Assembly (NCBI GenBank): GCA_009859145.1
Contig: VRVR01000022.1
Span: 274,857-338,856, forward strand
DNA: 64,000 nt
Source: Andalucia godoyi And28
Lineage: Eukaryota; Protista; Jakobida
Direction of reading: 5' to 3'
Both the position numbers and the translations under genes were made by a program. This document shows, piece by piece, positions 8,903 through 63,486 of the stretch; the stretch's first letter is position 1, and the number at the start of each line of letters is the position of its first letter. The notes under the pieces are model-generated. The model was not told the origin of the DNA, made no database searches, and was given only the letters and a program-made list of their open reading frames with translations.

Positions 8903-9280
8903 GATGAACAATCGCACCAAGTCTCACCTCGTCGCCGCCGTCCCAACAACAACAGCATGAAAGTTCAGCGCATTCGGCGCAATACCCTGGAGCAACAACG
9001 GCCAAAAGAATGCGGGAGAAACAGGAAGTGAATAATTGCTATAGTCATGCATAATAATAATAAATAAATAAAATAAAGGAAACCCAAAAACAAAACAAAA
9101 CAACAAAAAACGCGGCGAACCGTAGTCGGTTCCGTTGAACCTCAAACGTGTTTCTGGACTTTCGCTCAGAAGCCGCCGAAAGCTGTGCTGGTGTTCCTTC
9201 CGTCCTCTTTTTGTTCTACTTCTGCATATGCGACATTCGCTTTCGCTCACAGGGATAGGGACACGGATACTCGCACAATC

Positions 9281-10963: not shown

Positions 10964-13900
10964 TCATGGTACGCGACCGGACTCGATCATTTCTGCATAT
11001 TCGCGAGATTGCAAAAAGAGAGGGAACATGGACTGCTCCATGTCGCGTCGGACCTCTTCCACAGCCGAATCAAAAAGATTACGAGGAGGATTGCTGGACG
11101 ACGCTTGGTACAATGATAAGATGTGTCGCCGGGTGGCTTCGTTGATGTTGATCGTATCGAACGAGTCGAGGGAGATGAATCTTTCAATGATCACACGAGA
11201 CTTCAGCGCAGACCGGGGTACAGCGCTCTCTTGCTGGAACTCGCGGACAGAATTGTAAAAGTTCAAACCATCCGGATCAAAATTGTTCTCCACAAAAGAC
11301 TGGAAATACTGACACATGTGGCGATCATTCAAAATCATTAGCAACGCCGATGCAGAGGACTTCGCATTGGCGGACGATGACGAGCGAGCATTCGACGCCG
11401 ATGACGAATGGTGATGATTAGCGTGCTGCAGCTGTTTCAACGGCACTACCGCTTCCTCTTCGTCGTCATCCAGCACAATCTCAATCTCATTCTTGTTCGC
11501 TTCCTGCGACGACCGACTCTGCGACGTCGGGGCAGCACGCTGAGGCGCTGCGGCCTCAACAGAGGCTTCCTCTTCATCATCATCCGGATTGAATTTGTAC
11601 GCCGGAGGAGCAACTACAGAAGAGGTCAAAGATGGGGTTGGCTGTTGTGGCGACGGCGGATGCTGAGTTGACACGGGCAGGTCGCGCTTCTCCAGGTTGA
11701 GACGTAGCAGCTTCTCTGAAATCTCCCTTTGGAAGGGAGAAGCCGAAGAGGAACTGTTGGATGCGCTAGGAGACCCAGGAGACAGTGGCTGGTTCGCGTG
11801 AGAGCGAGGACGGGGCATGCGCTCTTGAGATTTCGAGAACGATCGCTCGCGCTTCACGCGCGCAGATACTGCTGCCACGCGCGGTGCCAAAGCCTTTGGA
11901 GACTCTGCGGCGCCGTCGGACAACAAATTCGGGGATACAGGTCGGAGCGAGACTGCCTCCTTGGGAATTGCAGACGACAAATTCGGGTCGTCAAACTCAC
12001 GAGACAGGAATAACACGGCAGCCTGCAGAGCATCCACCGTCGGTTCGAGCATTTCCGAAAACAAGACGGCTCCATCTTCCACAACCGCATCATCAGAATC
12101 GCGAGGAAGAGCAACCTGCAAAAGAAGCAAGGCGCTGGCGCGAACGCGCTCCGCAGACGATGCGTATCGGCTGCACCAGCTCCAGAACTGCTGATCCAAC
12201 CGGGAGAGCAAAGGCCGGAATGCAACAACAAGAGTTGGCCGGTATGCTTCGCCCATCGATTCAAGCAGCGAGCGTGTCCATCTGAACAGCATCTCGAGCT
12301 GCAAGGAGCGCTGGTCAAAGATCGGAGAACGAGCACCGAGGGGCGGCAAAATGACTCCGAGAATTTGTCCGATGTACAGCCACATAGGAGACGAGGCGTC
12401 ATCCCCCAGAAGACTCATAATAGCGGAAGCCAAGCGCTTCGAGAAAGTCTGCGATGACAAGCGACTGGCTGGATCCTGCGAAGCAAATGCCCGCAGAGCC
12501 TTGATTGCTGAGAACCAGCCATCAACGATGTCTGGCGACAGCCCATCAATCGTCCCTTGATGCTGCTCCATGGCAAATGCAACATCCAGGCATACGCCCT
12601 CAACATCTTTTCTATTCCCAAGAGACAGTCGAAGAATTGATGGCGTCAGGGCAATCAACGTTGTAACATACTGGAAGACCGTGGGATGAATGGATGCACA
12701 GGAAGACGGGACCACCTGGACATACCGAGGAGAAAATGCTTGCGCAAAGGTTACGAGTAGCCGGAGTGCCAGAGGCTCGCATTCATTTCCGACATCCGCC
12801 AATGCCGGAAGAAGAAGCGGCTGGATTCCATCAAACAAGGACGTTGCTGCGCTTGACGATCCCAGAGAACATACGGGCACTTTCCAGTCCGCGACCAAGT
12901 CGATTCCATTCGGTCGATTCATGTTGAAGAATGTTTCGAAACAGATAGAATCCTGTGCAATCGTGTCGAGCAGGGGAATTGCGCTGCGATACAAGAGCTG
13001 AGAAGCAGTGACCTGCGACGGCTGCTGGGAACGCTTGACGACGGAATGCACAAAAGAACGCATTAGAGCAATCGAGGAGGAGAGCATTGCAGGGCTTTCA
13101 TGCAACACGTTACGCTTGGAAAGGTCCTGTGCTGCCGCGGTAAGAACGCGCGCACACTCAATGGCTCTTAGGAGGGAGGGAGCAAAGGCAGACTCACTCG
13201 TACCCAGCGCAAGAATCTTCCAGAGCAGCCTGCGCTTCGTGGTGGAGCGAGGTTTCGCACGCTCCGCTTTTCGCAAGGACCGCTCTGCCGCTTGAATCGC
13301 CCGAAGCAGGTGCGTCTGCACCAAGAACAGCACTCGGGAATTCATCGGTCTCAAGACCGAACGAAAGACTGCCAGCGCCTTCAAACAGATGCGATGATGC
13401 GCATGCACGGCATGATCTGGAAGAACGACACGCGATGAGGATGGGAAAGCAAACTGCAGGGACTCATGCCCCAGCAGCTCCACAAAGTACGGAGACACTG
13501 ACTGGGAACTTCCAGACATCGTCTGGACCAGCACTCTGACAAACTCGTCTACAAACACCACGGGGCCCTTGGACGGATCCACTTCGCTACTCGACCATGC
13601 GAACCGGACGTTCGGCTGCTGCAGCAGGAAAGCATACGATCGTAAAGCCGTTGCACGACTTGCTTCTGACCCTTGAAATTCCGACGCTTGCGCCATCATT
13701 ACATTGCTGAGGAACATCCGAACCTGGCTGGCATCAATATGTCGGTCGTCCGCGTGGATAAGCGCAAACAAGATGCACACATGAAGACGTTTCTGCAAGG
13801 CCGCAAAGTGATTCGTATCGCAAGCGAGATCCACAAGAGTCTGGAGGACAACCGCACAGCGACATCTCCAGTGCTGAAGAGCCTGATCAACAGAATCAAT

Positions 13901-16900
13901 ATGTCTGCGGCGTGCCGCTGCCACAAAGTTCTTCACGAACTCCGCACGATTCGGCTTTTCAGAGACAACAACGGCAGCCTGCGATGCAGATGATGATGAA
14001 GCTTCTGCTTCAGCACCAGCAGCACTGTTTGTCTCGGCTTTTTCATCCTTGATGACTGCAGCCTGAGCAGCATTTTCAACATCCGCCACAGAGCTCAGAG
14101 ACGCTGCCGCTGCTTCAGTCTGCGCCTCGGACTCTGCTGCATGAGCAACCAACTCTGGAGCACTGCAGACCTCGGACGGCTTTTCAGTTTCGAATTGCTC
14201 CTTGTACGCAGCAGCAGCCTGTTCACGAGCAATGACCTTGCTGAAGTCTCCAATGCATTCGCGGTAGCGCTCCGCGCTGAGTTCATAAACAAGTGGCAGC
14301 ACAACTGCGTCCGCATGCTGGTGATACAAGAACGCAAGAATCTCCGCAGCAAGTGCTTTTCCACTCTTCTGCATTGCATCATTATCGTTCGCAAACTCCA
14401 AACCTGCGGAGACATCGACGAGAATGGACACAACACGAGGAAGATTGACCTGCTCCTCATCCTCCGCCAGAGGGGCTTCAGCAAACGACTGCCACATCTT
14501 TCGCACTTCGCTGGCGGCTCCATTGACCGAAAAGAAAGTTGTGCTCACCGACAACAACGTAGTGACCATGTAGGTCGAGTCCTTCGCGTATGTCGACAAT
14601 CCAATGTTCCCAAGCCACGGGGTGACGATAGGAATCATCCACGCACAGGGTTTGCGGGATTCGATCATTCGCATAAAAGCGTCCTTCACAATGGTCAGCG
14701 ACAACGGCTTCAGCTTCAAGTTCGATGCCAGCAATCGAGACACCAGAGAGGCGTGCTTTCGTACAGACTCGATATGTCCAGAGGAGAACACCAGACGGAA
14801 ATACTGGAGATCGTCCAGCAGGGTAGCAGCACGGAAGATCTTCACGACAATGCACAACGATTCGTAAGCAGCCAGGTGAATCTCTCGCGCCTCATGATTC
14901 AAGAACCACAAGAGCAAGACAATCACCGAAGACAACACATCATCGGATAAATGAATACGACTCTCAAGGGCACCAATGTCAATTTCTGGGAAAGCGACGT
15001 ATGTGTTTTGTGTGAACGCAAGAATGAGGTCGTGCACTTGACGATGCTCGTCTAGACCACTCAGCGGGGCCGGAGGTGCATTTCCAAGCGTGGACTCAAA
15101 GCCAGAGGCATCAAACTTTGCGGGAACAAATACTCGGGACAGAGCTCGAAGCAAGGCACACCGATGAGCTTCTTCCTCAGCAGTTGAATCCTTGTCCAAA
15201 GAGTCGTACATGACCTTGAGCAACTGGTGCAGCAAGATGGCAGAGTTGTTATTCAGAATCAAGGCGTCAATCACATGATACCTCAAATATTCCAAATCGA
15301 TCCACTGATCCAGCTTTTCGTTGCTCTCCTCTAAAATACGACCAAAATGCGGGACAATAGAAAGAGCAATATGCGCCTCCTTCACAATAGCAGACGCCAG
15401 CACGTCCATAGTAGACAACGTCGATTGTTTGACAGCAGCGTCCTTTTCTTTGGACTGTACGAGCGTCGCCGCCTGCGAGCACCGCGGATCAAAAGGAGAA
15501 GCCTGTCGAATCCGGCCGATCGGCAACAGCATCTGCACAAGAAGACGTCGAAGCTCCACAGTGGACTCGGGAAGCACAGACAAAACCTGCTCCAACGACA
15601 CAATCAAATCAAAAGCTGACACCAATTCGACTACCGCAGTAGCAGCATACTTGGACACCGGGCCACGGTGAAACGACGAAATGCGACCGACGTCCTCAAA
15701 GGTGATTGCTGTTAATCTCTGCCAACTCTGAAGAATCATTCGCAGGGCGGCGTCGGCGTTGGACGGCAAAACGTTGAACGCCACATCGCGCATGACCGGG
15801 AGAGAGAGCAACACGAGGCGATCGCCGTTCTTCTTGCGCATCTTGGACAGCGATTGAACTGAAGACTGCGGTACAGACTTGATCACAGGAGTCGATGATC
15901 CTCCACGCTCCTCGCGAATACCAAACAGGCGCTGCAAAACAGACAGCGACAGCGACGAATGAGTAGATGCCAATGCAAACGAAGCGGCGTAACGCACCCA
16001 AGTGACATCAGCAGTAAGCAGCGGTAGCACTGTTTCCACCAGGGAATCAAAGAACGCAGATTCCGGAACAGAATCTGCTCCAGCCCGTTCGGCTGTGGTC
16101 TTCGATCCAGGGGCTTCCTCGACTTGGTCTGAGAACGAGACATGCTTGCGTGAGTCTGACGAGGAAAGAGGGGTGCCCGGCGCTGCCGCTTCCGGTTCCG
16201 TCTTCTCTTGGACGGGAGTCGATCGCTGAACAGAGGTCGAAGAGAATAAAAAGCAAAGCCCCCAAAAGAACATCAAGGCGTAATGAGACCCAAAAATACC
16301 TTTTGCCTTATTCTGCTTTTCCGATTTCTGCAATTGCTCTTCGCTCAAAGGCACTTCTGGTAGCAACGCAAGGCGTTTCAAGACTCGATCACGAGCCAAT
16401 CTGGCGATATCGACCTTGACATCACACAACAGTTCACGAAGAACGTACCCATATAGCAAAGTGTTGTCAGTATCCAATGCAGCAAACAGCGGAGCTGGCT
16501 CTGATTCCATTTGGTCCTGCAGAACCTTGAAGTACGGGTCGGCGACTGCATTCACACGATACGCATTTTGAAGCTCCGGCGTAGAATGCACGACAATCGG
16601 ACGGTCAACGACGATTCTATTGTTTGCATCATCGATCAGACACTTGTTGAACGCACGAAGAACAAGTTCCTTCTGCCACTCCGATTCTAGTTTCACGGGC
16701 AGCCGCTGGCGGACCTGAGAACTGGCCATGGCTGCTACTTGCTCCAGAACACGAAGGGCGAGACGTCGTACGACACCAGAGTGATGTGCGAGGAACGGCA
16801 AGCAAGACCCGTAAATCTTGTCAACCAAAGCATCAGAAGGCCCATTTGTTGATGAATAGTCCGATGAGCGATGCCAGAGGTTCAGAAAACACAGAACGTT

Positions 16901-19324
16901 GTCCAGCAAGGTAGAGACGCAGGATTCGGAAGCATATGCGTCGTTCTGAAGCAGAAGCACCGTTTGTTCCACAATAGTCGAACGCTGCTGTGACGAATTT
17001 TTCGCAACAAGAGATTGGAGAGCGTGGGACGTTGCAATCGCAAAAAGCGTCTCAAAATGAACCAAAAACCGTCCGAGAAATTCTCCCCTCTCGAACAGCA
17101 TCGAGTCTGGAGTGTGGACAGCGGAAAGGCAGCGAACTGCTTCCACATAAATTCGCAGATACCGCAGCTTGTCTTTGGTAATGCTGCCACGCAAAACATT
17201 GGCTTGTACTTGTTTTGCGCGGTCAGAACGAGAAAGGGTTTGTTCTGGCACGCGAGCGTCGTACTGATAGATATCTTTGACGAACTTCTGCTGTGCCTTG
17301 AAATACGAAGATCGGTCTTCGAGGCTGTCCGTCGTAGAAATCGGCATTCGTTTCTTCCCTTCCGAGCCGAATGCCACGTTCTCCCATACCGATACGACAT
17401 TTTCCAAGGACGCATGGTCAGAAACTGCCCTGGAGTTCTTCACATGAAACTCAATCTTCAAATCCTCATCTTCCTCCGCACTGGCTGCAGAAGACGGAAT
17501 GCTTTCCGATGATTCTTCTTTTTCCGAGCGCTCGGCAAACATACGAAGCGCCTCGGTTTCAAAGGAATCCGATTGATAGTAGGTTACGGGCACGTACTCG
17601 GGAACAACAGACACTCCCGAGTTCCATCCACCAATCTCACGATCGCACAGCGGCAACAAAAACACCACGGCCGTTGAAAGCAGCCCTTTCAAACTTTCAG
17701 TGGCCTCGACGCTGAAGCTCATCAAATGGTCCACAACACGGTTGTCTAGAACTGCTCGAAGAGCACGAATTCCAACTGCATATGCCTCGTGAGACTCCTT
17801 CGGCTTGTCCTTCGCAAGAAGCGTGTGAAACACTGTCTTGCCCAAGGGCAAGCTCTGCAGCGTGATCGTGACCAAAATGTCCACGTACAATCCGTGATGC
17901 AGAAGTGAATCAAACAATGATTTCTTGCCAACAAACAGAAGGTCAATAAACGTCGTCAATCGACTATCCAAGGAGTTCAAGTCATCATCATATCGACTGC
18001 GAAGACCAGCAAAAGAAGGAAAGCCCGAGTCGACTGCATCGTCATCACCCTCAGTGGATTCTCCATCCGACTCGACGTCTTCTGCGCCCAACTGCACACT
18101 TCCCGCGGGAGCTGCACCGGAAGCTGCAGGCTTCTGGAACATAGAGTTACGTCGACCCTTGACGAACGAATTTCGAGGAGCAACAACGTTTGGTGAAGGC
18201 AACGAGGAGCCGTCGTCTGCAGAGGCGGCGGCTGAGGACGAATACACGACACTCTCCAGCGAATTCTTATCAAGAGTCACAGACAATGCCAAATACGATG
18301 GCAATTTATCATTGGACACGTGCCTGCCCCGCAAAAACGTAAGAATGCCTTCCAAGACAGCCGCCATTTGCTTCTTTGAACCATAGTACGAAGATACGGA
18401 TTTTTTGAACAAAAGGAAGAGGCGCTCAAATTCTGTGCGCGGAGCATGCGCCAAGCAAACAGCCATGATTTGCAGACCCATTTCCAGAGTGTCGTCTGAC
18501 TTGATCCATTTTGCGGCAAGAGTGGAGATCATGTTGAGGAGCACGTCATCCAGAAACACGCCCGGCTGCAAGCCGTTCACTGCTGAGAACATTGCGAATG
18601 CAAAAGGATGTCTGGTTTTCTTCGAAACGTCGATGCAGACAAGGCAGTTCCGGATGAAGGATGTCAGAGAAGAAGAGTCCTGTGCAGACATTATACGCAA
18701 ATCTACTCGGGAAATGATTTTGCAAGCCTTCAGCAGATCCACATCTCCAATTTGTTTGATGCTTCCTGGCTGGAACATTGCAGCCCACTTATCCAGAACG
18801 GCTGCAGAGGACCATCTCGACAAACCTTCCAGAAGCAAAACAAGAGATTCAGAATGCGTCGAATACATGCTGAATCCGAGATCAAGAATGCTTCGAACGA
18901 GCGAGGCAGGAATGTCAGCTGCAGGCGCTGCATGAGCGATAACAGCCAGTGTGTCAACTGCAACCCGCGACAAATACGATTTCACAATCATGGCATCATG
19001 CTGACCTTTTGAATCATAGTGTGGACATGACAGCAATGCAGCAGACACGAGAGGGCTTGAGACATCTGCAAACGTCAAATATGTTGCCGCAAATGTCGCC
19101 GGAGAGGCCTTTGCAGCGCTGGAGAGAGTTCGAAGATGCGTGAAGTAGCCTTTTGAAGACGGGAACGACTGCCAAAGCTGCGCATCAAAGACCTCTCTCG
19201 TGAGCTTCTTGTTCTTCTTATCTGGAACATATGGAACAGAGAGCAAGGTGTCCATTTCCCGGCTCAGAATAGAAAGCAGTGTCGCCGCCAACGACTGCGC
19301 GGTATGTGTAGCAAGCGTCGGCAT
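10964..19324 (-). CDS. FRY: Furry/Tao3/Mor2 (NDR-kinase scaffold) homolog with a C-terminal RGS domain
   Basis: About 2786-aa ORF (first ATG 19324). HEAT/ARM-like helical protein matching Furry N-terminal motifs (LDSRLTTFIDLLF, AVGIRALRAVLD, FLGRFLVHFE...ATSHALQSLV, LPFLAH...VRRLALRVLEQV). S/P-rich linker, then an RGS fold (ILNDRHMCQYFQSF...LNFYNSVREF...IIERFI...ININEATRRHI...NLFDSAVEEV...MFPLFLQSREY). Confidence 0.8.
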   Translation of the reverse strand: MPTLATHTAQSLAATLLSILSREMDTLLSVPYVPDKKNKKLTREVFDAQLWQSFPSSKGYFTHLRTLSSAAKASPATFAATYLTFADVSSPLVSAALLSCPHYDSKGQHDAMIVKSYLSRVAVDTLAVIAHAAPAADIPASLVRSILDLGFSMYSTHSESLVLLLEGLSRWSSAAVLDKWAAMFQPGSIKQIGDVDLLKACKIISRVDLRIMSAQDSSSLTSFIRNCLVCIDVSKKTRHPFAFAMFSAVNGLQPGVFLDDVLLNMISTLAAKWIKSDDTLEMGLQIMAVCLAHAPRTEFERLFLLFKKSVSSYYGSKKQMAAVLEGILTFLRGRHVSNDKLPSYLALSVTLDKNSLESVVYSSSAAASADDGSSLPSPNVVAPRNSFVKGRRNSMFQKPAASGAAPAGSVQLGAEDVESDGESTEGDDDAVDSGFPSFAGLRSRYDDDLNSLDSRLTTFIDLLFVGKKSLFDSLLHHGLYVDILVTITLQSLPLGKTVFHTLLAKDKPKESHEAYAVGIRALRAVLDNRVVDHLMSFSVEATESLKGLLSTAVVFLLPLCDREIGGWNSGVSVVPEYVPVTYYQSDSFETEALRMFAERSEKEESSESIPSSAASAEEDEDLKIEFHVKNSRAVSDHASLENVVSVWENVAFGSEGKKRMPISTTDSLEDRSSYFKAQQKFVKDIYQYDARVPEQTLSRSDRAKQVQANVLRGSITKDKLRYLRIYVEAVRCLSAVHTPDSMLFERGEFLGRFLVHFETLFAIATSHALQSLVAKNSSQQRSTIVEQTVLLLQNDAYASESCVSTLLDNVLCFLNLWHRSSDYSSTNGPSDALVDKIYGSCLPFLAHHSGVVRRLALRVLEQVAAMASSQVRQRLPVKLESEWQKELVLRAFNKCLIDDANNRIVVDRPIVVHSTPELQNAYRVNAVADPYFKVLQDQMESEPAPLFAALDTDNTLLYGYVLRELLCDVKVDIARLARDRVLKRLALLPEVPLSEEQLQKSEKQNKAKGIFGSHYALMFFWGLCFLFSSTSVQRSTPVQEKTEPEAAAPGTPLSSSDSRKHVSFSDQVEEAPGSKTTAERAGADSVPESAFFDSLVETVLPLLTADVTWVRYAASFALASTHSSLSLSVLQRLFGIREERGGSSTPVIKSVPQSSVQSLSKMRKKNGDRLVLLSLPVMRDVAFNVLPSNADAALRMILQSWQRLTAITFEDVGRISSFHRGPVSKYAATAVVELVSAFDLIVSLEQVLSVLPESTVELRRLLVQMLLPIGRIRQASPFDPRCSQAATLVQSKEKDAAVKQSTLSTMDVLASAIVKEAHIALSIVPHFGRILEESNEKLDQWIDLEYLRYHVIDALILNNNSAILLHQLLKVMYDSLDKDSTAEEEAHRCALLRALSRVFVPAKFDASGFESTLGNAPPAPLSGLDEHRQVHDLILAFTQNTYVAFPEIDIGALESRIHLSDDVLSSVIVLLLWFLNHEAREIHLAAYESLCIVVKIFRAATLLDDLQYFRLVFSSGHIESVRKHASLVSRLLASNLKLKPLSLTIVKDAFMRMIESRKPCAWMIPIVTPWLGNIGLSTYAKDSTYMVTTLLSVSTTFFSVNGAASEVRKMWQSFAEAPLAEDEEQVNLPRVVSILVDVSAGLEFANDNDAMQKSGKALAAEILAFLYHQHADAVVLPLVYELSAERYRECIGDFSKVIAREQAAAAYKEQFETEKPSEVCSAPELVAHAAESEAQTEAAAASLSSVADVENAAQAAVIKDEKAETNSAAGAEAEASSSSASQAAVVVSEKPNRAEFVKNFVAAARRRHIDSVDQALQHWRCRCAVVLQTLVDLACDTNHFAALQKRLHVCILFALIHADDRHIDASQVRMFLSNVMMAQASEFQGSEASRATALRSYAFLLQQPNVRFAWSSSEVDPSKGPVVFVDEFVRVLVQTMSGSSQSVSPYFVELLGHESLQFAFPSSSRVVLPDHAVHAHHRICLKALAVFRSVLRPMNSRVLFLVQTHLLRAIQAAERSLRKAERAKPRSTTKRRLLWKILALGTSESAFAPSLLRAIECARVLTAAAQDLSKRNVLHESPAMLSSSIALMRSFVHSVVKRSQQPSQVTASQLLYRSAIPLLDTIAQDSICFETFFNMNRPNGIDLVADWKVPVCSLGSSSAATSLFDGIQPLLLPALADVGNECEPLALRLLVTFAQAFSPRYVQVVPSSCASIHPTVFQYVTTLIALTPSILRLSLGNRKDVEGVCLDVAFAMEQHQGTIDGLSPDIVDGWFSAIKALRAFASQDPASRLSSQTFSKRLASAIMSLLGDDASSPMWLYIGQILGVILPPLGARSPIFDQRSLQLEMLFRWTRSLLESMGEAYRPTLVVAFRPLLSRLDQQFWSWCSRYASSAERVRASALLLLQVALPRDSDDAVVEDGAVLFSEMLEPTVDALQAAVLFLSREFDDPNLSSAIPKEAVSLRPVSPNLLSDGAAESPKALAPRVAAVSARVKRERSFSKSQERMPRPRSHANQPLSPGSPSASNSSSSASPFQREISEKLLRLNLEKRDLPVSTQHPPSPQQPTPSLTSSVVAPPAYKFNPDDDEEEASVEAAAPQRAAPTSQSRSSQEANKNEIEIVLDDDEEEAVVPLKQLQHANHHHSSSASNARSSSSANAKSSASALLMILNDRHMCQYFQSFVENNFDPDGLNFYNSVREFQQESAVPRSALKSRVIIERFISLDSFDTININEATRRHILSLYQASSSNPPRNLFDSAVEEVRRDMEQSMFPLFLQSREYAEMIESGRVP

Positions 19325-19652
19325 TCTAGATCTTTTCTCTGTGTCGCGCTCTTGACGTCTGACCAAAGACTAACCAACAAAAAAAGACGACGAGAAACTA
19401 GCCCACAGAAAAGAAAGAAAAAAGAGACGAAAAAGAGAAAGGGATGAAAATATTATTACGCAGAGGACGAAACTAACACTTTTAAAAAAAGAGACGAGAA
19501 GAAGTAGGAAGAAGAAGAAACAAATAGAAGATGAAAATGCAAAACAAAATAAAATACGATGAAAAGGAATACACATAAAACGAGAAAACCTTTTTGCCAA
19601 GCGAGAGGAAGACGATGTGGGGCAGCGGGGCCTTTCGTGGGAGCACGGTCGA

Positions 19653-45884: not shown

Positions 45885-46002
45885 TGACCGGCACCATCAT
45901 CCTAGGTCTTCCTTTCCTCCTTTCTTCCGCTTGTTGTTGTTGTTGTTGGTGGTGGTGGTGTTGTTGTTGTTGTTGTTGTCCTTCTTGTAGCGTTTGGTTG
46001 AG

Positions 46003-48741
46003 ATGCCTGCGTGTAGTATTAAGGTGTGCATCCGCTTTCGTCCTTTTAACCGCCGTGAGTTGGCGCTTGGGGAGTCGAAGGGCAAGTTTCAGATCCAGGA
46101 TGGGGTGAATCTGGAGTGTCTTGGAAACACACTGCAGCATCACCAGTTTGCATTTGATCGGATTTTTGGGATGAACACAAACCAACCAGAGGTTTTTGAG
46201 TATGTCGGAAGACCTTGCATTGAGGATGTGATGCAGGGTTTCAATGGAACGATTTTCGCGTACGGCCAGACCGGTGCGGGAAAGTCGTTTTCGATGATGG
46301 GCGATTTGCACCAGGAGGAAATCAAGGGCATTATTCCACGAGGCGCAAACCTGATTTTTAGAACTATCGACAAGGACACGTCAAGCACGGAATACTCAGT
46401 GAAATGCTCTTACCTGGAAATCTACAACGAAACCATTCAGGATCTGCTCGATCCAACGGGGCTGAAGAAGAATCTCAAGATCCACGAGTCGCCTCAGAAG
46501 GGAATTTACATCCAGGATCTCACAGAAGAATATGTGAACAACGAGGAGGATATTTACACCCTGCTGGACATCGGCGCGTCGAATCGAGCTGTTGCGTCGA
46601 CAAACATGAATTTGGAGTCGTCTCGATCGCACACCGTGTTCATCATCGAAGTGCACCAAAAGACAGGAGATGGGTCCACAAAGTCCGGTCGGCTGAATCT
46701 GGTCGATCTTGCTGGCTCGGAAAAAGTTGGAAAGACGGGAGCGACTGGACAGACTCTGGAAGAAGCAAAAGGGATCAACAAGTCGTTGTCTGCGCTCGGT
46801 CTCTGCATCAATGCCCTGGTGGAGGGCAGAAAACATGTTCCATACCGCGATTCAAAGCTTACGAGAATTTTGCAAGATTCGCTGGGCGGAAACACAAAGA
46901 CAACGCTGCTCTGTGCGTGCTCGCCCCACGACGACAACTTTGAAGAAACCATTTCGACGCTCAAGTTTGGCGCTCGTGCCAAGACAATCAAGACGAACGT
47001 CAAGGCCAACACACAAAAGAGTGCGGCGGAGCTCATGCGTATTATTGAAAAGCTCAAGCAGGAGCTTGCCGCTCTCAAAGCCTATTGCGCCGAGTTGGAG
47101 AAGCAGCTACCGTCCGCCAAGGTCGCTGAAATCCGAGAGAAAGTGGCATCCATTGTCGGTACGGCTTCCGATGCCACGGATGGCTCCGGTGCGCCTGCAC
47201 TCGGTGACGATGAGAGCAATGCAGATGACGAGAATGTTGTGAATAATCCGTCGCTTGTTACCCGGGCACTGGAGTCTGATCCCGTGGCATCTGCAGAGAT
47301 GGCTGCGGAACTTGATCGAGTTCGCGAGGAGTCGCGGACTCGGGTTGCAAATTTGGAATCCGACCTGTTGGAAGCTACCCAACGGGAAGAGGAGCTGCGG
47401 GCTCGGATCAAGACCCTTGAGACCACCTCTGCGAATGTCGATTCACTGCTCGCCGCAAAGGATGCAGATCACTCGCGACAGTCCGCTGTGTGGAACGATG
47501 AGAAAAACAAGCTCATTTTCGAGCGGGAGCAGGTTGAGCTCGATCTGGAACACATTATCGCGGAATTGGAAGATGCAAAGATTGCCCGTGAGAAGATGCA
47601 AAAGGAACTCGCAATGACCAGAACGTCTTTCAATGAATACAAGTTGCAAACGGGGGACATGGAAAAGCTGCAAGCGGAGCAGGAAATTCTGTTTGAGGAA
47701 CTAGCTGCTGCTGAAGAAAAATTTGCGATCACGCAGGAGAAGTGTGACATGTATCGCCAGCAGGCGGACGTCAATTCGAGAAAGGCAGAGGACACGCTGA
47801 AATCCCTCAAGGATGTGGAGAAGGAGCGCGACGAGCTGTACGATTATATTCAATCACTGGAGAGAGATCTGGAAGAGGCGACCCGCAAACGCATTGAAGA
47901 GGAGGGCAAGGTCAAGCAGCTTGAACAGACACTCGCGGATAGCCGCGTGCAGTCCGGGGAGGCCAAGGCTTCTGCCCAAGCGAATGCCGCCCAGCAGTTG
48001 ATTGTCGCGCAAACACAAATGGAGGTTCTGGCGTCGGAGAAGAGGTCTCTCGAATCGCGTCTCGAAATGGAGTCGCTTCGGGTTTCCGTGTTGACGGAGA
48101 AGAACGAGACGTTGTCCAAGGAATCCAGTGATTTGCAATCGCAGGTTGTTGCGTTGCAGGAGAAATCCATTGCTGCCGAGAAGCGTGCTGCAGAAGCTCA
48201 TCATGCGGCTGCTGACGCAGTTTCGTCCAAAGAGGCGGAGTCGCTGCGTGCGCGAGTAGGTGTACTGGAGAAGGAGAAGATCCAGTTGGAATCTGCAAAG
48301 GATGTTGCGGAGTTTGAAGCCGCAGAGGCGGCCAAGAAATCGTCCCAGATGCAGTTCAAAGTCAACTCGTTGCAAACGCGTTGTGATGCCCTGGAAGAGG
48401 AGGTCAAGAGACTTCGAGGTCGGATGCAAGAAATTGAGGTCAAGGCTGATGCAGAAGAGAAGAGCAAAGTTGAGCTCCAGCAGAAGCTCGACGAATCGGA
48501 TAAGCAGGTGCAGCAGCTCAAGTTGCTGAACGAGAATAACATTCGTCGTGCAAAAGTCTGGAAGCCAATCACCAAGTCAGGATCTTCAGTCATTGATGCG
48601 TTTTCACAAAAAGAGGAATTCGGCATGCACAAACTTCGATCGACGGGATCCAAGTTGTTGGAGGAAGCGCGAGAGCAAGCACGAGCTGCCGATTCTCCAA
48701 AGGCGTCTCCGTCGCCGCATTCTGCGTTTTCATCCAAATGA
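46003..48741 (+). CDS. Kinesin-1-like heavy chain
   Basis: IKVCIRFRP, FNGTIFAYGQTGAGKS (P-loop), NLESSRSH, LVDLAGSE, HVPYRDSKLTRILQDSLGGN; long coiled coil; tail KVWKPI resembling the IAK motif. Confidence 0.9.
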   Translation: MPACSIKVCIRFRPFNRRELALGESKGKFQIQDGVNLECLGNTLQHHQFAFDRIFGMNTNQPEVFEYVGRPCIEDVMQGFNGTIFAYGQTGAGKSFSMMGDLHQEEIKGIIPRGANLIFRTIDKDTSSTEYSVKCSYLEIYNETIQDLLDPTGLKKNLKIHESPQKGIYIQDLTEEYVNNEEDIYTLLDIGASNRAVASTNMNLESSRSHTVFIIEVHQKTGDGSTKSGRLNLVDLAGSEKVGKTGATGQTLEEAKGINKSLSALGLCINALVEGRKHVPYRDSKLTRILQDSLGGNTKTTLLCACSPHDDNFEETISTLKFGARAKTIKTNVKANTQKSAAELMRIIEKLKQELAALKAYCAELEKQLPSAKVAEIREKVASIVGTASDATDGSGAPALGDDESNADDENVVNNPSLVTRALESDPVASAEMAAELDRVREESRTRVANLESDLLEATQREEELRARIKTLETTSANVDSLLAAKDADHSRQSAVWNDEKNKLIFEREQVELDLEHIIAELEDAKIAREKMQKELAMTRTSFNEYKLQTGDMEKLQAEQEILFEELAAAEEKFAITQEKCDMYRQQADVNSRKAEDTLKSLKDVEKERDELYDYIQSLERDLEEATRKRIEEEGKVKQLEQTLADSRVQSGEAKASAQANAAQQLIVAQTQMEVLASEKRSLESRLEMESLRVSVLTEKNETLSKESSDLQSQVVALQEKSIAAEKRAAEAHHAAADAVSSKEAESLRARVGVLEKEKIQLESAKDVAEFEAAEAAKKSSQMQFKVNSLQTRCDALEEEVKRLRGRMQEIEVKADAEEKSKVELQQKLDESDKQVQQLKLLNENNIRRAKVWKPITKSGSSVIDAFSQKEEFGMHKLRSTGSKLLEEAREQARAADSPKASPSPHSAFSSK

Positions 48742-55943: not shown

Positions 55944-57311
55944 ATGACAGAAACCAAGACGAAAGCACCGGAGTCAAATGTCGAATTCTTCCAGTGCAGA
56001 CTTGAAGCGGTTCCGCTTGACATTCTGGAATTCATTTCCCTGTTTCGGGACTCGCCGTTCCGCAATTGGTTTTTGCAGCAGTCAAATATGCCGCAGTCGC
56101 TCAAGGATTGCGTGACTGCGACGGAAAGAGAGGGACTCTACCATCCGGAGACGGAAGTGTCCGCAATGACGGAGAATTCGTTCTTGTATTGCCCGTTCGC
56201 AAAGTGGGCGGATCAAGGAGCTGGCGTGTATGCATCCCGTCGGATTGTGGTTATGTGGGATGGACGACTTGTTTTGGATGTCCTACGATTCGAAAAGGAC
56301 GACATGTCATTCCTTAGAACGCCCCTGAAGGACGCCAAGATATTCTTGAACCACAGCAACATCAGCGTGTTTGCTCAATCCTCGGAGCCCATGGACCACC
56401 ACATCCTTCTGCTGTTTCGTCCTGGGAATAGTAATCAAGACGATGTGAAATGGCACGCTCGTCTTGTGCTGATCCATCCCTCTGTGATTCTCTCGAATCT
56501 CCATGCAGGATTGCTGAAAGTGCTTGGTCCCTTTCTGTCCTCGCAAATCGTCGTGGGTGCAGTTGGAGTCAGTCCCGTTGTAATTGACGAGAGCCAATGG
56601 GGGCTTTTGCGCCCGGAGCGAGTCACAAGTGCACATCTGCCTCACTCATGGACGCTGCAGTCGGAAACCAAAAATACGTCTGCTGGGACGATTTGGGCGG
56701 ACGGTCAACGCACGTGTTGGTACGGCTGTTCTCGCATGTGCTTATGCGGTGCTGCCAAACCAATTCTTGCGACGTGCTGCGATCCCAGCGACACTAACCC
56801 TGGTGTCTGCATTCGCACTGGATTTGGACCGCAGTTTCAACACCGCATTGTGACAGAGAATTGTCCATGTTTTTGCTGCGTGTGGGGCAACGAAGTGGAT
56901 CCTCGAACTCATCAACTGTATTCTCGGTGCGGGTTTTCTCCCGTTGGATGTCTTTTTTTACTGTGCGGTCCTTGCGGCCTCTTGCCGCAAATGTGCATCC
57001 CCCCGTTCTCAATCGGTTGTCGCGAAACGCTTCTCGGAACCTATACATCTCTCCATGACAATTATGCAGACGTAGCTGGTGCCGTTGTAGAGTATGGTCC
57101 AAAGTCGATTTCTCTTAGGGCAACAATATCTCCTCCGGCGCCAGTTCCTCTCAACATGGGCGCACGAGACCTTTCCATTACTTCCATCTACCCGAGATGT
57201 TGCAGCGACAAGACACAGCCGCCAATCGACCGTCTGACGCTGGTGCGGGATGCCTTCAGTGCACTGGGTGCACCACTTGTTCACAGTTCCTCTCCTCAAA
57301 ACATGATGTAA
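55944..57311 (+). CDS. Hypothetical protein with a Cys-rich C-terminal half (possibly scramblase-like)
   Basis: 455-aa ORF; dense Cys clusters (CSRMCLCG, CPCFCC, CGPCG, PRCC). Confidence 0.7.
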   Translation: MTETKTKAPESNVEFFQCRLEAVPLDILEFISLFRDSPFRNWFLQQSNMPQSLKDCVTATEREGLYHPETEVSAMTENSFLYCPFAKWADQGAGVYASRRIVVMWDGRLVLDVLRFEKDDMSFLRTPLKDAKIFLNHSNISVFAQSSEPMDHHILLLFRPGNSNQDDVKWHARLVLIHPSVILSNLHAGLLKVLGPFLSSQIVVGAVGVSPVVIDESQWGLLRPERVTSAHLPHSWTLQSETKNTSAGTIWADGQRTCWYGCSRMCLCGAAKPILATCCDPSDTNPGVCIRTGFGPQFQHRIVTENCPCFCCVWGNEVDPRTHQLYSRCGFSPVGCLFLLCGPCGLLPQMCIPPFSIGCRETLLGTYTSLHDNYADVAGAVVEYGPKSISLRATISPPAPVPLNMGARDLSITSIYPRCCSDKTQPPIDRLTLVRDAFSALGAPLVHSSSPQNMM

Positions 57312-57689: not shown

Positions 57690-59945
57690 CTATACGTCTG
57701 ATCGATCCGAGTAAATGTAAAAGGGAGGATCGACAGGCATCTGAGAAATGGGCAATGGTGGCAGCCGGCTCGGAGCTGCGGAAACAGTGTACGCAGAGTG
57801 TGGGTCCGGTCCTGACGCAGGATGCGGTGTCGATGCACCGCCGGATTCGGGGAAAAGACCTTCTTCCACTAGGTTCTGCGAATACTTGCGCTCTTTCTTC
57901 GTCCGCGGTAACGAACGAGACCTCGCCGGCCGCAATTCGTCGTCATCGATGGACAGCTGGTCTGGAAATTGCGCTGTCGCACGAGCAATGTTGCTCAAAT
58001 CTTTCGAACTGGCACTGTGGTTACCACGAGGAGAAGGGAAGAAGGCTGATCTCAGTCGGTACTTGTTCGGAATCAGCTCCACCATCAACTCGGGAGCAGA
58101 GATTCCTTTTAGGGGAACAAATCCAATGAACTTCACAAATGGATCGCCACACTTGCGAAGAATGTCGTCTGTGGCAGTTAACTTCGCCCATGTTGCACCG
58201 GACACAATAATCTGTCCTCCGTGTCCAGCGGAAGAAACGCGAGCTGCGAGATTGATGGATGGCGAGAAAAAGTCCCATCGACGAATGCTGGGGTCCCACG
58301 ATGGTTCTGCAAATCCACAGTGAATCCCCATTCTGACACGCAAGCCACGGAAGATGCACACGGAAGGGCGCTCCGGGTGCTCGGGATCCTTGGCGTACTG
58401 TTCTTTGCAGATGGACTGCGGCCAGTCGGCCAGCATAAACGCCTCCTGAACACCAAGCGTCCACTTGACGGCGTCCATGAACTCTTGGAACACAAGGAAC
58501 AGCGAGTCACCTTCACTTTTGACGATGTAGCCGTGAAACTTTGCTGCCAGTTCACGCATGATTTCGTAGTGCATGTGAACGGCACGCTGCATGTGAACAG
58601 GCGACTCTTCCCAGAGAGCAGTGGATCCTTGTACGTCCGTGAACACAATTGCAATATCGCCATGAGGGGGTCTTTCGGAGTCTCCAGACACAATTCTCGA
58701 CAGCGCAACGCGGCGTTTGTGCGTGTACCACGAAAATCCAATGAGCGTCGCGATCACGAGAAGTCCCACTACAGAAAATACGGCTACAAGAATGAGCGTT
58801 GTTCCGGTCAGCTGCGTATCCGAACTCCCGGAAACGGATGCTTTTGGAAGCGGAACGAGGTCATACAGATACTCCCCGTTGACCGACACTCCCTTCAAAA
58901 TGAGAGTAATCCGATCTCGCAGCGCCGCTGACAGTGGAACCATGGTGTTATCATTGAGAATCGAGTCCGCCTGTGCTTCTGTCAGGAACCAGTTCACGAA
59001 CCGCAGGACTTCCAGAGCTTGAGTCCGCGATGACTGGGTAGTGTTGTGCACCATGAAGTACGTATAACTCGCGATGGGCCAAGAGAGCGTTCCGGGAGCA
59101 TCCGTAATCGTCGCGATCATCCGGAAGGGGCTTTGAAACACGCTTCCAAAATCGGTCATGGCAGACTGGATCGTTCCGCTTGTCGCAGACACCGTGTTGT
59201 TCGCCTTGTTAATCAGTCTGCTCAATGCAACATCGAAATAAACGGCAGAGGCAGGGTTCAGATATCCGATGCTGTATGTGTTTGCAAGAATCTGAAATGA
59301 GACTCCCCGATTTTGCAGCCCATAGTACTGCACAACAGGCCAGGTCGGTATGGAATTCACGCCTATTACAGTACCGAAGCCAGAAGGATCAAACTGCGAA
59401 AGGGCACTAGTAAATGCTTCGGTGGTACCGCTCTTGTCTTGCCGAACAACAATACTAATCCGCTGGGTGGGAAGCGACAGCGAGGGATTCAGAGCGACTA
59501 TTTGAGAATCGTTCCACCATCGGATTGCACCGAGGAAGATCTGGGCAGTCACGTATCTCGACAGAACCAACTGCCCCGAAGAGATGCCCGGTAAGTTGTA
59601 CCCAATCACAACAGCGCCAGCAAACGACGGGAACATTACGACGTCTGTGCTGTTCCTGTTATTCTTTTCGGCCGCAGAAAGATCCTCGTCGCTGCCCGCA
59701 AAGTCTACAGCGCTTGACAAGATCTGCGACTTGCCCGATCCAGATCCCGTCGCGGCATACGTAATTTTCACTGCATTGTCTCTCGACGAGCCAAATGCAA
59801 CAGCCCATGCATTGTAGACATCCGCTGCAAACGACGAGCCAGCGCCAGAAACGGAAACTTGCGCTCCGCTGGAAAACGAAACCCGATCGTTCCAAAGAAG
59901 AAGAATGCAGGTTACCGCCAAGAAACACGTTGTGCACCGATACAT
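57690..59945 (-). CDS. Receptor-type adenylyl cyclase: signal peptide - PstS phosphate-binding domain - TM helix - class III cyclase
   Basis: Start ATG 59945 with hydrophobic signal. PstS motifs GAGSSFA, TGSGSG, DFAGSD, WWNDSQIVALNP, VVRQDKSGTT, WPIASYTY. TM LILVAVFSVVGLLVIATLIGFSWY. Cyclase motifs IVFTDVQGST, VKSEGD, RVRMGIHCG, WDFFSPSINLAARV, GGQIIVS. Confidence 0.9.
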   Translation of the reverse strand: MYRCTTCFLAVTCILLLWNDRVSFSSGAQVSVSGAGSSFAADVYNAWAVAFGSSRDNAVKITYAATGSGSGKSQILSSAVDFAGSDEDLSAAEKNNRNSTDVVMFPSFAGAVVIGYNLPGISSGQLVLSRYVTAQIFLGAIRWWNDSQIVALNPSLSLPTQRISIVVRQDKSGTTEAFTSALSQFDPSGFGTVIGVNSIPTWPVVQYYGLQNRGVSFQILANTYSIGYLNPASAVYFDVALSRLINKANNTVSATSGTIQSAMTDFGSVFQSPFRMIATITDAPGTLSWPIASYTYFMVHNTTQSSRTQALEVLRFVNWFLTEAQADSILNDNTMVPLSAALRDRITLILKGVSVNGEYLYDLVPLPKASVSGSSDTQLTGTTLILVAVFSVVGLLVIATLIGFSWYTHKRRVALSRIVSGDSERPPHGDIAIVFTDVQGSTALWEESPVHMQRAVHMHYEIMRELAAKFHGYIVKSEGDSLFLVFQEFMDAVKWTLGVQEAFMLADWPQSICKEQYAKDPEHPERPSVCIFRGLRVRMGIHCGFAEPSWDPSIRRWDFFSPSINLAARVSSAGHGGQIIVSGATWAKLTATDDILRKCGDPFVKFIGFVPLKGISAPELMVELIPNKYRLRSAFFPSPRGNHSASSKDLSNIARATAQFPDQLSIDDDELRPARSRSLPRTKKERKYSQNLVEEGLFPESGGASTPHPASGPDPHSAYTVSAAPSRLPPLPISQMPVDPPFYIYSDRSDV

Positions 59946-61008: not shown

Positions 61009-63072
61009 TTAGATAAGCGCCTGGCGTTCGCCGGATCCGGTCCGCAACCGTCGGCTTCGCAAGAAGACATATGCAAAGGCCGCTCCGACCACAGCGGCGC
61101 CACCAATCGCGATTCCCACAATCGCACCTACTGGAAACGTGCTCTTGCTATCGTCTCCATCGTTGTGCTTGGGCGGAACGTAAGGACCGTCGAGATTGAA
61201 GTAGAGTTCGTCTGTCGACACACTAGCCATTTGATCTGGAGTCACAGCGACAACCATTATGGAATACTGGTCGCCATCTCCAAAGAGACTTTCGTACGTG
61301 AACTGAAACGAAGTCGATGTCGTCGTATAGGCTTTCATAAGCGCCTCACCAAGATCCGTGATTCTCACGTTGTACGATGAGATTGCCTGTCCGCGAGTAT
61401 CGGACGGCGGATCCCAACGGAACACAAAGTCAAAAAGCGATCCAGTGGCATACGTATCCATAGCAAGATTCCGGGGAGCAGACATCACCGCTGGAGACGC
61501 ATTGAACTCAACAGGCACGGAGGGATCGCCGACGTTTCCAAGTTCTTGAGAGACGGCAGACACGAGCACCGAGTACATCTTGAAGTCGCCAAAAAACTGT
61601 CGAAAAGGAATCGTAAATGCAGTGTCGGCAGACGATGTTGGATAGTTGCGAAGCCATGAGATCGCAGTGTCCGTGACCGTCACGACGTATGCTGCAATCG
61701 TCTGTCCCTGCAGAACAGTTGGGGCCTCCCACGAAAACGAATAGTCGTACGCATACGACTGCGAGTTCCACACAGGAACAACCTTGACATTTGACGGCGC
61801 ACCAAGGGGTGGTCCAGTGCCAAATACAGCTGGAGTCCGCTGCAGATACGAGTCGCCCTGGGACAGGTATGCCCAGTACTCGGTCAGCGGTGTCAAGTTT
61901 GTCGCATTCAGGGAACCAAAGTACAAAATCTCTCCAGTAGGTGAGGCCGGCGCAGTAACGTACAAGATATTGGAAACCCACGGTGAACAGCGATCACAAG
62001 TAAACGAAGCAGTTGTCAGATCATACGAAACGACGCGAAGCCCGTCCGGCGGGCTGGAGGGCCCGACGGCACCACCCACCTGAATTCTGTGCATCGTAAA
62101 GTCGCTTTCCACCACAAACATCGCGTTCAATTGCATGTTGCAGGAGCCATATACGAGAGGATTAGAGGTTGTTACGTTGTACCCGACAACACCTTTGCTG
62201 TCCAGGCCAAGCAGTACACCGCCGGAAATCACCCACACACTCAAGGTAGAACTGGGGCACGGGCAGAAGTGCTGGAATGGACCCGGAAGGGTGGTGTTGT
62301 AGGGAGCATATGCAAAACCACTCGATTGTCGAACATACAGTCTAGAACCAGTCGAAAACAGTTTTGCACCCTGAGACAACTTCACCACCGGCTCTGGGGC
62401 TTCGAACGTGTCCGTCACCGCATGTGCCGACGGCGTGTATCTTCGCAGCGTTGTGCCCTGAAACGCCACAAACCACGCAGTTCCCGTATCAAATGGCTGA
62501 TATGCGGCCGGGCCAGGCACACAGCCGTCTCCAAAGAAATTTAAAATGGTCCCATTCAGCGTCATGTGTTTCACATTGAATCCCAGCGTGCCCACGAGAT
62601 TCGAGTTAGTGACAACATACACCACAGACGGATAGTTGTAATGCCAGCAGAGAGCCGTAACCTTCACTGCCCCCCCAATGGCGGAAAAATCATAGGGAAC
62701 TTGGACATATGTGCTAGTTAGCTGATTGAAACGGAACAGTCCATTCTGCTTGGTCGACCATAGGAAATTGTATCCGTGACCAAAGATATTCACTGGCTCG
62801 ACTTCCGTAACCGAGTCATCAGGAACCGAAACGGACTGCAAAGTTCCGGACTGGAACGGGCTGTTCTGCAAGACTTGCACAGACACGTTCGAGCGAGTGT
62901 ATGTGTTCACGGACAAGGTTAGCATATCTTCAGAAACCGAAACAGGAAACGAACATGGGGGAGAGGGACAAATGCTGGCAGTCCAGTCAGCTGCTGCTGC
63001 GGAGCGAGCAAGCACTGCTATCACCACAAGAACAGCAACCCCAAGAATCTTCATCTGAACACAGCAAGTCAT
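61009..63072 (-). CDS. Type I membrane protein with about three fibronectin type III repeats
   Basis: Signal MKILGVAVLVVIAVLARSAAA (alternative start 63054). FN3-like repeats (APSNVKV...FSWEAP...YVVTV; APRNL...FRWDPP...YNVRI). TM GAIVGIAIGGAAVVGAAFAYVFL; short tail ending ERQALI. Confidence 0.82.
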   Translation of the reverse strand: MTCCVQMKILGVAVLVVIAVLARSAAAADWTASICPSPPCSFPVSVSEDMLTLSVNTYTRSNVSVQVLQNSPFQSGTLQSVSVPDDSVTEVEPVNIFGHGYNFLWSTKQNGLFRFNQLTSTYVQVPYDFSAIGGAVKVTALCWHYNYPSVVYVVTNSNLVGTLGFNVKHMTLNGTILNFFGDGCVPGPAAYQPFDTGTAWFVAFQGTTLRRYTPSAHAVTDTFEAPEPVVKLSQGAKLFSTGSRLYVRQSSGFAYAPYNTTLPGPFQHFCPCPSSTLSVWVISGGVLLGLDSKGVVGYNVTTSNPLVYGSCNMQLNAMFVVESDFTMHRIQVGGAVGPSSPPDGLRVVSYDLTTASFTCDRCSPWVSNILYVTAPASPTGEILYFGSLNATNLTPLTEYWAYLSQGDSYLQRTPAVFGTGPPLGAPSNVKVVPVWNSQSYAYDYSFSWEAPTVLQGQTIAAYVVTVTDTAISWLRNYPTSSADTAFTIPFRQFFGDFKMYSVLVSAVSQELGNVGDPSVPVEFNASPAVMSAPRNLAMDTYATGSLFDFVFRWDPPSDTRGQAISSYNVRITDLGEALMKAYTTTSTSFQFTYESLFGDGDQYSIMVVAVTPDQMASVSTDELYFNLDGPYVPPKHNDGDDSKSTFPVGAIVGIAIGGAAVVGAAFAYVFLRSRRLRTGSGERQALI

Positions 63073-63486
63073 TGCGATGGGAGCCACGAATTACAAAAAC
63101 CAAAGGGGATGTGTGTGGGAACTTCCATCAGAAATTGAAGAACACGGAGCGCATGCAATTGTGCGTGCTGGGGCCTGACCTCCTAAGACGACTGATTTTT
63201 CGCAGGATCGATTGCTGAACAAAATTGCAAAGTACCCAGTCAGAACCAATTATAACCAATTAGCAGTGATGCAGTGCATCGCCGGCGGCGTGGCCCACAG
63301 CCTCGCACAACAAATCGCGGGGAAATGCCCGATTTTGGTGAAGGACATGTGCTCAGAGGGGGGGACCCACAGTACCTTCTCCCAAAAGTCCAAGTCCAAG
63401 CCCCACTTAAACAAGGATCGTGTTCCGGAGACCATTCCACAGCAGCGACAATCCAAGACACTGCTACATACATACGAAGAATACAA

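Follow-up and report, generated by a model that had tools for sequence, protein, structure and literature searches.

We analysed a stretch of 64,000 nucleotides from the jakobid Andalucia godoyi And28 (contig VRVR01000022.1, positions 274,857 to 338,856; below, the window, with position 1 as its first letter). On its minus strand, at 57690..59945, lies an intronless coding sequence of 751 amino acids (aa) plus a stop codon (57690-57692), in which a PstS-type phosphate-binding ectodomain is joined through one transmembrane (TM) helix to a class III nucleotidyl cyclase domain. Our best reading, held with moderate confidence, is that the product is a phosphate-regulated receptor adenylyl cyclase. 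A preliminary description of the window had already named one intronless open reading frame (ORF) with a signal peptide, a PstS part, one TM helix and a class III cyclase. This layout was borne out by the ORF list, by Pfam and by a hydrophobicity scan, and the coordinates then given for the PstS part, the TM helix and the cyclase lie within a few codons of those given here.

The protein and its gene

The ectodomain is of the PstS type, that is, a type II periplasmic binding protein (aa 27-348; 58902..59867, on the minus strand like all features of this gene), as assigned from Pfam, NCBIfam, AlphaFold2 (AF2) and Foldseek. Pfam PBP_like_2 (PF12849) matched aa 27-321 with an E-value of 1.7e-21 (77.6 bits against a cut-off of 27), and the score for TIGR00975, the NCBIfam PstS equivalog model, was 233 bits (cut-off 205). 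The narrower enterobacterial model NF008171 stayed below its cut-off (175.9 against 339). PDB sequence matches of the ectodomain were to the PstS proteins of E. coli and Yersinia (1e-43 to 1e-45), and no other binding-protein family was detected in it by Pfam or NCBIfam; it holds a single PstS domain. The structure of the monomer was modelled with AF2 from a 33-sequence alignment (mean predicted local distance difference test score, pLDDT, 81.5), and both globular domains reached pLDDT > 90. In Foldseek, the modelled ectodomain was superposed on phosphate-bound PstS (1pbp, 1ixh-type and 9k3x) with TM-scores of 0.93-0.94 and a root mean square deviation of 1.9-2.3 Å over about 334 columns.

We aligned the ectodomain to E. 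coli PstS and found that all nine ligand or ligand-supporting residues were kept, the sole change being Thr to Ser at T10. The ligand residues are S38 and F39 (E. coli T10 and F11; 59829..59834), S68 (E. coli S38; 59742..59744), D86, which serves for both ligand binding and specificity (E. coli D56; 59688..59690), and the loop R168-Q-D170-K-S172-G173-T174 (E. coli R135, D137, S139, G140 and T141; 59424..59444). The phosphate motifs GAGSSF, TGSG, AGSD and RQDKSGTT, as well as the Ser in place of T10, had thus been read correctly before. Because all ligand residues are kept, orthophosphate would be held in a buried, fully hydrogen-bonded site of the E. coli PstS type. Judged from the alignment and the model, the Andalucia ectodomain probably binds inorganic orthophosphate. 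On its sequence, the domain is a PstS homologue and not a transporter subunit: a TM helix and a cyclase are attached to it, and the 64-kb window showed no pstC/A/B-like gene.

The ectodomain is preceded by a signal peptide (aa 1 to about 29; 59859..59945), recognised from hydrophobicity and alignment, with the h-region CFLAVTCILLLW and a likely cleavage site near the junction of SSG and AQ. In the alignment, the mature protein is predicted to begin at the same place as mature E. coli PstS. Residues 2-21 formed a helix of low pLDDT in the AF2 model.

The class III nucleotidyl cyclase domain covers aa 424-624 (58074..58676) and was assigned from Pfam, a PDB match, alignment and Foldseek. Pfam Guanylate_cyc (PF00211) matched aa 426-593 with an E-value of 1.9e-22 (80.2 bits against a cut-off of 21.9). 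The preliminary description had proposed a domain scan with Pfam or CDD; the scan made here, with Pfam and NCBIfam, returned PBP_like_2, TIGR00975 and Guanylate_cyc. The catalytic residues were read from an alignment of 26 sequences, the Andalucia cyclase and 25 relatives. They comprise the metal-binding D437 in the motif FTD (58635..58637), the adenine-selecting K476 and the second metal Asp, D480, in VKSEGD (58506..58520), and the adenine-selecting D558 together with S561 and the transition-state pair N565 and R569 in WDFFSPSINLAAR (58239..58274); R538 is kept as well. D437, K476, D480, R538, D558, N565 and R569 are all retained, and the same holds for GRESAG4.1 and for 20 of the other 24 relatives in the comparison. 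The full set of adenylyl-cyclase residues claimed earlier (metal Asp, Lys/Asp and Asn/Arg) was accordingly present in this alignment, and from these residues the cyclase looks active and ATP-specific.

The closest solved cyclases were GRESAG4.1 and GRESAG4.3 of T. brucei (about 1e-24 to 1e-25), with a Foldseek TM-score of 0.75 and an identity of about 28%. An insert at aa ~506-533 aligns with the delta-subdomain region of GRESAG4 and is about 10 residues shorter in Andalucia. Bacterial cyclases, among them those of Myxococcota and Riflebacteria, were more similar (40-43% identity). We considered the label 'trypanosome-specific' for the cyclase and rejected it, because the bacterial homologues are nearer than GRESAG4. 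For the same reason, 'trypanosome-type' fits the architecture better than the ancestry of the catalytic domain.

Between the two domains, AF2 and the alignment place an extracellular stalk or linker at aa 349-382 (58800..58901). It is followed by the single TM helix at aa 383-406 (58728..58799; hydrophobicity scan and AF2) and then by the basic residues HKRR, in accord with a positive-inside orientation. This was the sole strong membrane segment in the hydrophobicity scan, in which the N-terminal hydrophobic core was signal-peptide-like. A helical juxtamembrane segment of 17 residues (aa 407-423; 58677..58727; Pfam and AF2) leads from the TM helix to the cyclase. In the AF2 model the TM and juxtamembrane parts form one continuous helix (aa 382-420), which stops a few residues before the first cyclase strand. 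Pfam found no kinase-homology, HAMP or other domain between the TM helix and the cyclase. The C-terminal tail (aa 625-751; 57693..58073; alignment and AF2) contains a short conserved motif, R-x-x-F-F-P-x-x-R (aa ~630-641), and after it a disordered Ser/Pro-rich stretch, with pLDDT < 50 from aa 642.

The ORF runs from its first ATG to the stop through 751 unbroken codons, and an in-frame TTG would extend it to 60002. GC content is about 50% along the whole window, and a chance origin of 751 open codons in such DNA is excluded. The protein was matched to ANDGO_00956 of Andalucia godoyi in EukProt with 98.5-99% identity (tblastn, 98.5% over aa 3-745 of P0001). Thirteen residues differ between the two proteins: ten in aa 7-21 of the signal peptide (59883-59927) and three in the tail, at aa 638, 671 and 684 (57894-58034). 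Zero differences were found in aa 22-637, which hold the PstS domain, the TM helix and the cyclase; we count this as purifying selection and as a point in favour of a receptor adenylyl cyclase. An intron or an alternative first exon was considered as the cause of the divergent N-terminus of ANDGO_00956, and was rejected since the EukProt N-terminus is absent from every upstream frame. We therefore take the signal peptide to have diverged between alleles or strains, and the window and the EukProt proteome seem to derive from different isolates or assemblies.

The neighbours of the gene in the window are typically eukaryotic. They include a kinesin (45994-48741), a proteasome alpha subunit, Brix, PWWP-PHD and CEP76/C2 proteins and a protein kinase; further genes encode an SMCHD1-like ATPase and a 2800-aa RGS-domain protein. 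The receptor gene is thus nuclear and not a bacterial contaminant. No paralogue of it was found in the window by tblastn with the whole protein.

Relatives of the fusion and origin of the PstS module

We searched 1.84 billion cluster representatives exhaustively with HMMER and obtained many proteins with both domains. Their architectures were sorted by local domain and hydrophobicity scans, and nine were confirmed with Pfam. The order PstS-TM-cyclase was found in two paralogues of Entosiphon sulcatum (P0002, marked as a complete Trinity ORF, and P0048), in Euglena gracilis (P0064) and in Willaertia magna (P0054, KAL9656567.1). With Andalucia, the fusion spans Jakobida, Euglenozoa and Heterolobosea, the three lineages of Discoba. 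It had been supposed that the architecture may exist in databases, and this was the case: ANDGO_00956 bears just the name 'Phosphate-binding protein PstS', and the entry from Willaertia is called 'hypothetical protein'. The sequence is therefore already public, under an uninformative name. The preliminary description had also named separate transcripts for the two halves as a finding that would speak against the fusion. Complete Entosiphon Trinity transcripts carry both halves, which argues against split transcripts in the relatives, the only proteins to which this evidence applies.

The same fusion was found on a metagenome contig (P0003) amid SWIB, VPS9, zf-MYND and RGS genes, which point to a eukaryotic source. 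Its gene model is truncated; the N-terminal third of the PstS domain lies just upstream across a gap of about 40 bp (L001 7775-8011 and 8052-8783), and this gap is probably a short intron of an uncultured eukaryote. The recurrence of the fusion in Entosiphon, Euglena, Willaertia and a eukaryotic metagenome contig argues that it is functional and old. A profile word-index search for named fusions gave no new ones and returned mostly stand-alone bacterial PstS.

Two further observations concern the relatives. The nearest PstS relative of the Andalucia protein, P0041 on an 18-kb Logan contig, has the same layout and a degenerate cyclase that has lost the first metal Asp and the K-x-x-G-D motif; it is likely a pseudo-cyclase, a paralogue or orthologue from a related organism. 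The top-scoring proteins P0032-P0038, P0040, P0042-P0045 and others are very long, with three to five tandem cyclases of the same subfamily and without a PstS domain.

To place the PstS module, we built a neighbour-joining tree of 165 PstS domains. The evidence from it is limited, as the domains were sampled by their similarity to the query, only five bacterial sequences had names and the tree comes from a distance method only, with saturated distances capped. One side of a bipartition held all 16 domains of known eukaryotic origin and 48 of the 57 domains from fused or long proteins, with 6 short ones; the opposite side held all five known bacterial sequences and 81 of the 87 stand-alone PstS. 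The bipartition was supported in 91 of 100 bootstrap replicates, and in 96 of 100 when the most divergent 15% were left out. Because the eukaryotic PstS domains fall together in the tree, it suggests that PstS was acquired once by eukaryotes and that domain shuffling followed. A prokaryotic origin of the fusion was also considered. A GTDB-wide pattern scan returned 80 prokaryotic loci, a limited sample in which absence is not proven; both domains were within 3 kb of each other in 0 of them (74 had the cyclase match only and 7 the PstS match only), which gave this origin no support.

PstS ectodomains were also found on other outputs. Proteins of Haliotis asinina (P0005) and Tubulanus polymorphus (P0006), encoded on scaffolds of 58 Mb and 21 Mb, contain PBP_like_2, a kinase-homology domain and a cyclase domain. 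Their annotations read 'atrial natriuretic peptide receptor 1-like' and 'retinal guanylyl cyclase 2-like'. Neither has lost any residue of the phosphate-ligand set. Their cyclase parts were not matched by the local cyclase profile and may be divergent. P0114, which groups with them, has a canonical guanylyl cyclase domain with the Glu/Cys specificity residues.

PstS domains ahead of a seven-transmembrane (7TM) part, as in the G protein-coupled receptors (GPCRs) of class C, were found in Calcarisporiella, in Chromosphaera and in an MMETSP transcript. Four tandem PstS domains occur in P0037 (Chromosphaera perkinsii), P0078 and P0059, followed by 7TM in P0037 and P0078 and by one predicted TM in P0059; in P0037, two of the four have a canonical phosphate site. 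The PBP_like_2+7tm_3 architecture has been mentioned in passing in genome surveys of Spizellomyces (SPPG_06488), Plasmodiophora brassicae and amoebae, in which phosphate is not discussed as the ligand (PMC3251606, PMC4815078, PMC10445921).

Taken over all these proteins, a wider reading is conceivable, and we advance it tentatively. An old, pan-eukaryotic family of phosphate receptors at the cell surface, so far unrecognised, may use the PstS flytrap as its sensor; this module would have been acquired once and then wired to three outputs. These would be an adenylyl cyclase in Discoba, a receptor guanylyl cyclase in lophotrochozoans and other lineages, and a class C GPCR in fungi, ichthyosporeans and algae, with the Andalucia protein as the simplest and most canonical member.

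Proposed mechanism and alternative explanations

Class III cyclases work only as dimers. Because of this, and because all catalytic residues stand on one chain, a homodimer with two active sites is expected. The protein would be a type I membrane receptor from which the signal peptide is removed, with the PstS Venus-flytrap domain toward the medium, and one TM helix and a short juxtamembrane helix would link the flytrap directly to the cytosolic class III adenylyl cyclase. Phosphate would close the flytrap and thereby shift the spacing or rotation of the two TM/juxtamembrane helices. This shift would alter the productive pairing of the catalytic domains, and external phosphate would in this way set the rate of cyclic AMP (cAMP) synthesis. 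Natriuretic-peptide receptor guanylyl cyclases and trypanosomatid receptor adenylyl cyclases have been proposed to work on the same logic. We consider it fairly probable that phosphate binding is coupled to cyclase activity.

In P. aeruginosa, phosphate-loaded PstS activates the chemoreceptor CtpL, and PstS can therefore act as a signalling input (PMC8050422). Trypanosomatid receptor cyclases, which have flytrap ectodomains with unknown natural ligands, are activated by dimerisation of the catalytic domain (PMC6027212). For the bacterivorous flagellate A. godoyi, one may speculate about a role of the receptor in chemotaxis, feeding behaviour or phosphate homeostasis.

Several points weigh against a phosphate-regulated cyclase. 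Bacterial PstS is monomeric, and the coupling of a monomeric flytrap to a dimeric output is not obvious. The stalk has low confidence in the AF2 model (aa 368-384) and is without the Cys pair found there in most relatives. The full canonical phosphate site is present in only 5 of the 25 PstS domains of PstS-cyclase proteins: D56 is commonly replaced by Glu in Entosiphon, Willaertia and Euglena, and the family also shows F11 changed to Leu, Gln or Ala and T141 changed to Ala or Val. The PstS-cyclase family may thus not be uniformly phosphate-specific, and since the Andalucia protein is its most canonical member, the case for phosphate is strongest there and weaker for the family. In the cyclase, S561 (58263-58265) stands where all 25 compared cyclases have Gly (D-x-x-G-x-x-x-N), and the EukProt allele also has Ser; this change, which the preliminary description had missed, could reduce cyclase activity. 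Finally, neither a downstream cAMP effector nor a phosphate transporter was found in the window.

Among the alternatives, the one that survives best, although we regard it as unlikely, is that the ectodomain binds phosphate without gating the enzyme. The cyclase would then be constitutive or controlled from the cytosol, by the tail or by phosphorylation, and PstS would capture phosphate or concentrate it at the cell surface, or would anchor or dimerise the protein. Membrane-tethered binding proteins that merely deliver substrate are common in Gram-positives and archaea. The tail of the Andalucia protein (aa 642-751) is long, disordered and Ser/Pro-rich, and regulation through the cytosolic delta-subdomain or through phosphorylation has been proposed for trypanosome cyclases (PMC6027212). 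However, no PstC, PstA or PstB partner was seen in the window, the fusion occurs in four Discoba genera, and the same ectodomain is also carried by a receptor guanylyl cyclase and a class C GPCR. With PstS joined to several signalling outputs, the pattern fits a sensor module and not a transport accessory.

It is also improbable that the protein is a genuine receptor for another ligand, which could be arsenate, phosphite, pyrophosphate, an organophosphate or some other tetrahedral oxyanion or phosphorylated compound. The drift of the ligand sites among the relatives and the NF008171 score below the cut-off could be explained in this way. However, Andalucia keeps every ligand residue, including the R168-D170 pair and D86, whose E. 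coli equivalent makes PstS prefer protonated phosphate to sulfate; moreover, the TIGR00975 equivalog cut-off is passed and the model superposes on closed, phosphate-bound PstS at about 2 Å.

The third alternative, that the cyclase is weak or dead and the protein is a scaffold, a pseudo-enzyme or a regulatory partner of another cyclase, appears doubtful to us. The change of Gly561 to Ser in an otherwise invariant motif would be accounted for, as would the degenerate cyclase of P0041 and the loss of catalytic residues in some relatives with two PstS domains. On the other hand, all seven residues known to be needed for class III catalysis are present, the domain is identical in amino acids between the two Andalucia alleles, and position 561 is not known to take part in catalysis. 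From the close bacterial homologues of both domains one might suspect an artefact, be it a bacterial contaminant, a chimeric assembly or two adjoining genes read as one, but this is highly improbable: the ORF is unbroken with no stop across the PstS-cyclase junction, the flanking 60 kb holds eukaryotic genes, the fusion recurs in ANDGO_00956 and in independent Entosiphon and Euglena transcripts, and in the 80 prokaryotic loci returned by the scan the two domains never stood within 3 kb of each other; a contaminant or chimeric assembly is rejected on the gene neighbourhood and the independent transcripts.

Comparison with known systems and neighbouring genes

The Andalucia protein shares its general plan with the trypanosomatid receptor adenylyl cyclases (T. 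brucei ESAG4/GRESAG4 and Leishmania RAC), which have an ectodomain of binding-protein fold, one TM helix and a C-terminal class III cyclase. GRESAG4.1/4.3 gave the best solved cyclase match, the catalytic residues are identical, and both organisms belong to Discoba. However, the Andalucia protein is much shorter (751 aa), and its cyclase is closer to bacterial enzymes. The trypanosome ectodomain consists of two Venus-flytrap domains with unknown ligands (PMC6027212), whereas Andalucia has a single PstS domain with a recognisable ligand site. Trypanosomatid receptor adenylyl cyclases have been without a known ligand for decades (PMC6027212), and a free-living relative with a readable ectodomain would offer a model for their gating.

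With bacterial PstS of the PstSCAB ATP-binding cassette transporter, the Andalucia domain has in common the sequence, the fold and all phosphate-ligand residues. It differs in that it is fused through a TM helix to a cyclase, is encoded by a nuclear gene with no pstCAB nearby in the window, and falls in a eukaryote-only clade of the neighbour-joining tree. P. aeruginosa CtpL is likewise a transmembrane signalling protein for which PstS is the phosphate-sensing input, but there the two are separate, non-covalently associated bacterial proteins and the output is a chemotaxis kinase cascade (PMC8050422).

The metazoan receptor guanylyl cyclases of the NPR-A type are likewise built as a class III cyclase joined by one TM helix to a flytrap ectodomain. 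They are dimeric receptors that pass a ligand-induced rearrangement of the ectodomain across the membrane, and the Andalucia protein may work in a similar manner. Some animal receptor guanylyl cyclases, those of Haliotis and Tubulanus, carry a PstS ectodomain with the full ligand set. In contrast to the NPR-A type, the Andalucia protein has neither a kinase-homology domain nor ANF_receptor in Pfam, and it has the Lys/Asp pair for ATP and not the Glu/Cys pair for GTP as in P0114. The class C GPCR-like PBP_like_2 proteins have the same kind of sensor module with a 7TM output instead of a cyclase, and none of them has been functionally characterised.

A receptor cyclase with a binding-protein ectodomain is of a known kind; a PstS ectodomain whose ligand can be read from the sequence is new. 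Full-text literature searches brought up no description of a PstS-cyclase in any organism and just passing mentions of PBP_like_2 on 7TM proteins. The well-worked phosphate pathways of eukaryotes, with SPX domains and inositol pyrophosphates, report internal phosphate, and the reading of external phosphate is poorly understood. The statement of the preliminary description that eukaryotic phosphate sensing is mainly intracellular is nevertheless too simple, because the yeast Pho84 transceptor and mammalian PiT1/2, CaSR and FGFR1 have been proposed as extracellular or transporter-linked sensors. The Andalucia protein is a concrete candidate for a cell-surface phosphate receptor of a free-living eukaryote. 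Since the ligand chemistry of the sensor is known at atomic detail and the product of the enzyme is easily measured, the hypothesis can be tested with standard assays.

PstS on animal guanylyl cyclases and class C GPCR-like proteins suggests a wider receptor family, which automatic annotation mislabels as 'PstS', 'natriuretic peptide receptor-like' or 'retinal guanylyl cyclase-like'. Were the family reading to hold, the question of how phosphate outside the cell is sensed by many eukaryotes would have a direct molecular answer, and the Andalucia protein would be the first trypanosome-like receptor adenylyl cyclase with a nameable ligand.

Several other ORFs of the window were recorded. Upstream of the receptor gene, at 61009-63087 on the minus strand, a 692-aa ORF has a signal-like segment at its N-terminus, a TM helix at its C-terminus and a long extracellular part rich in Ser, Thr and Val. 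It had no Pfam match and may encode another orphan surface protein adjoining the receptor. A 455-aa ORF (55944-57311, plus strand) is convergent with the receptor gene; it also had no Pfam match, and its second half is Cys-rich. Two very long ORFs lie on the minus strand at 10964-19366 and 2846-8920. The 2800-aa product has the RGS domain at its C-terminus and a weak MOR2/PAG1 match at its N-terminus, and the 2024-aa product contains a GHKL ATPase and an SMCHD1-like S5 domain.

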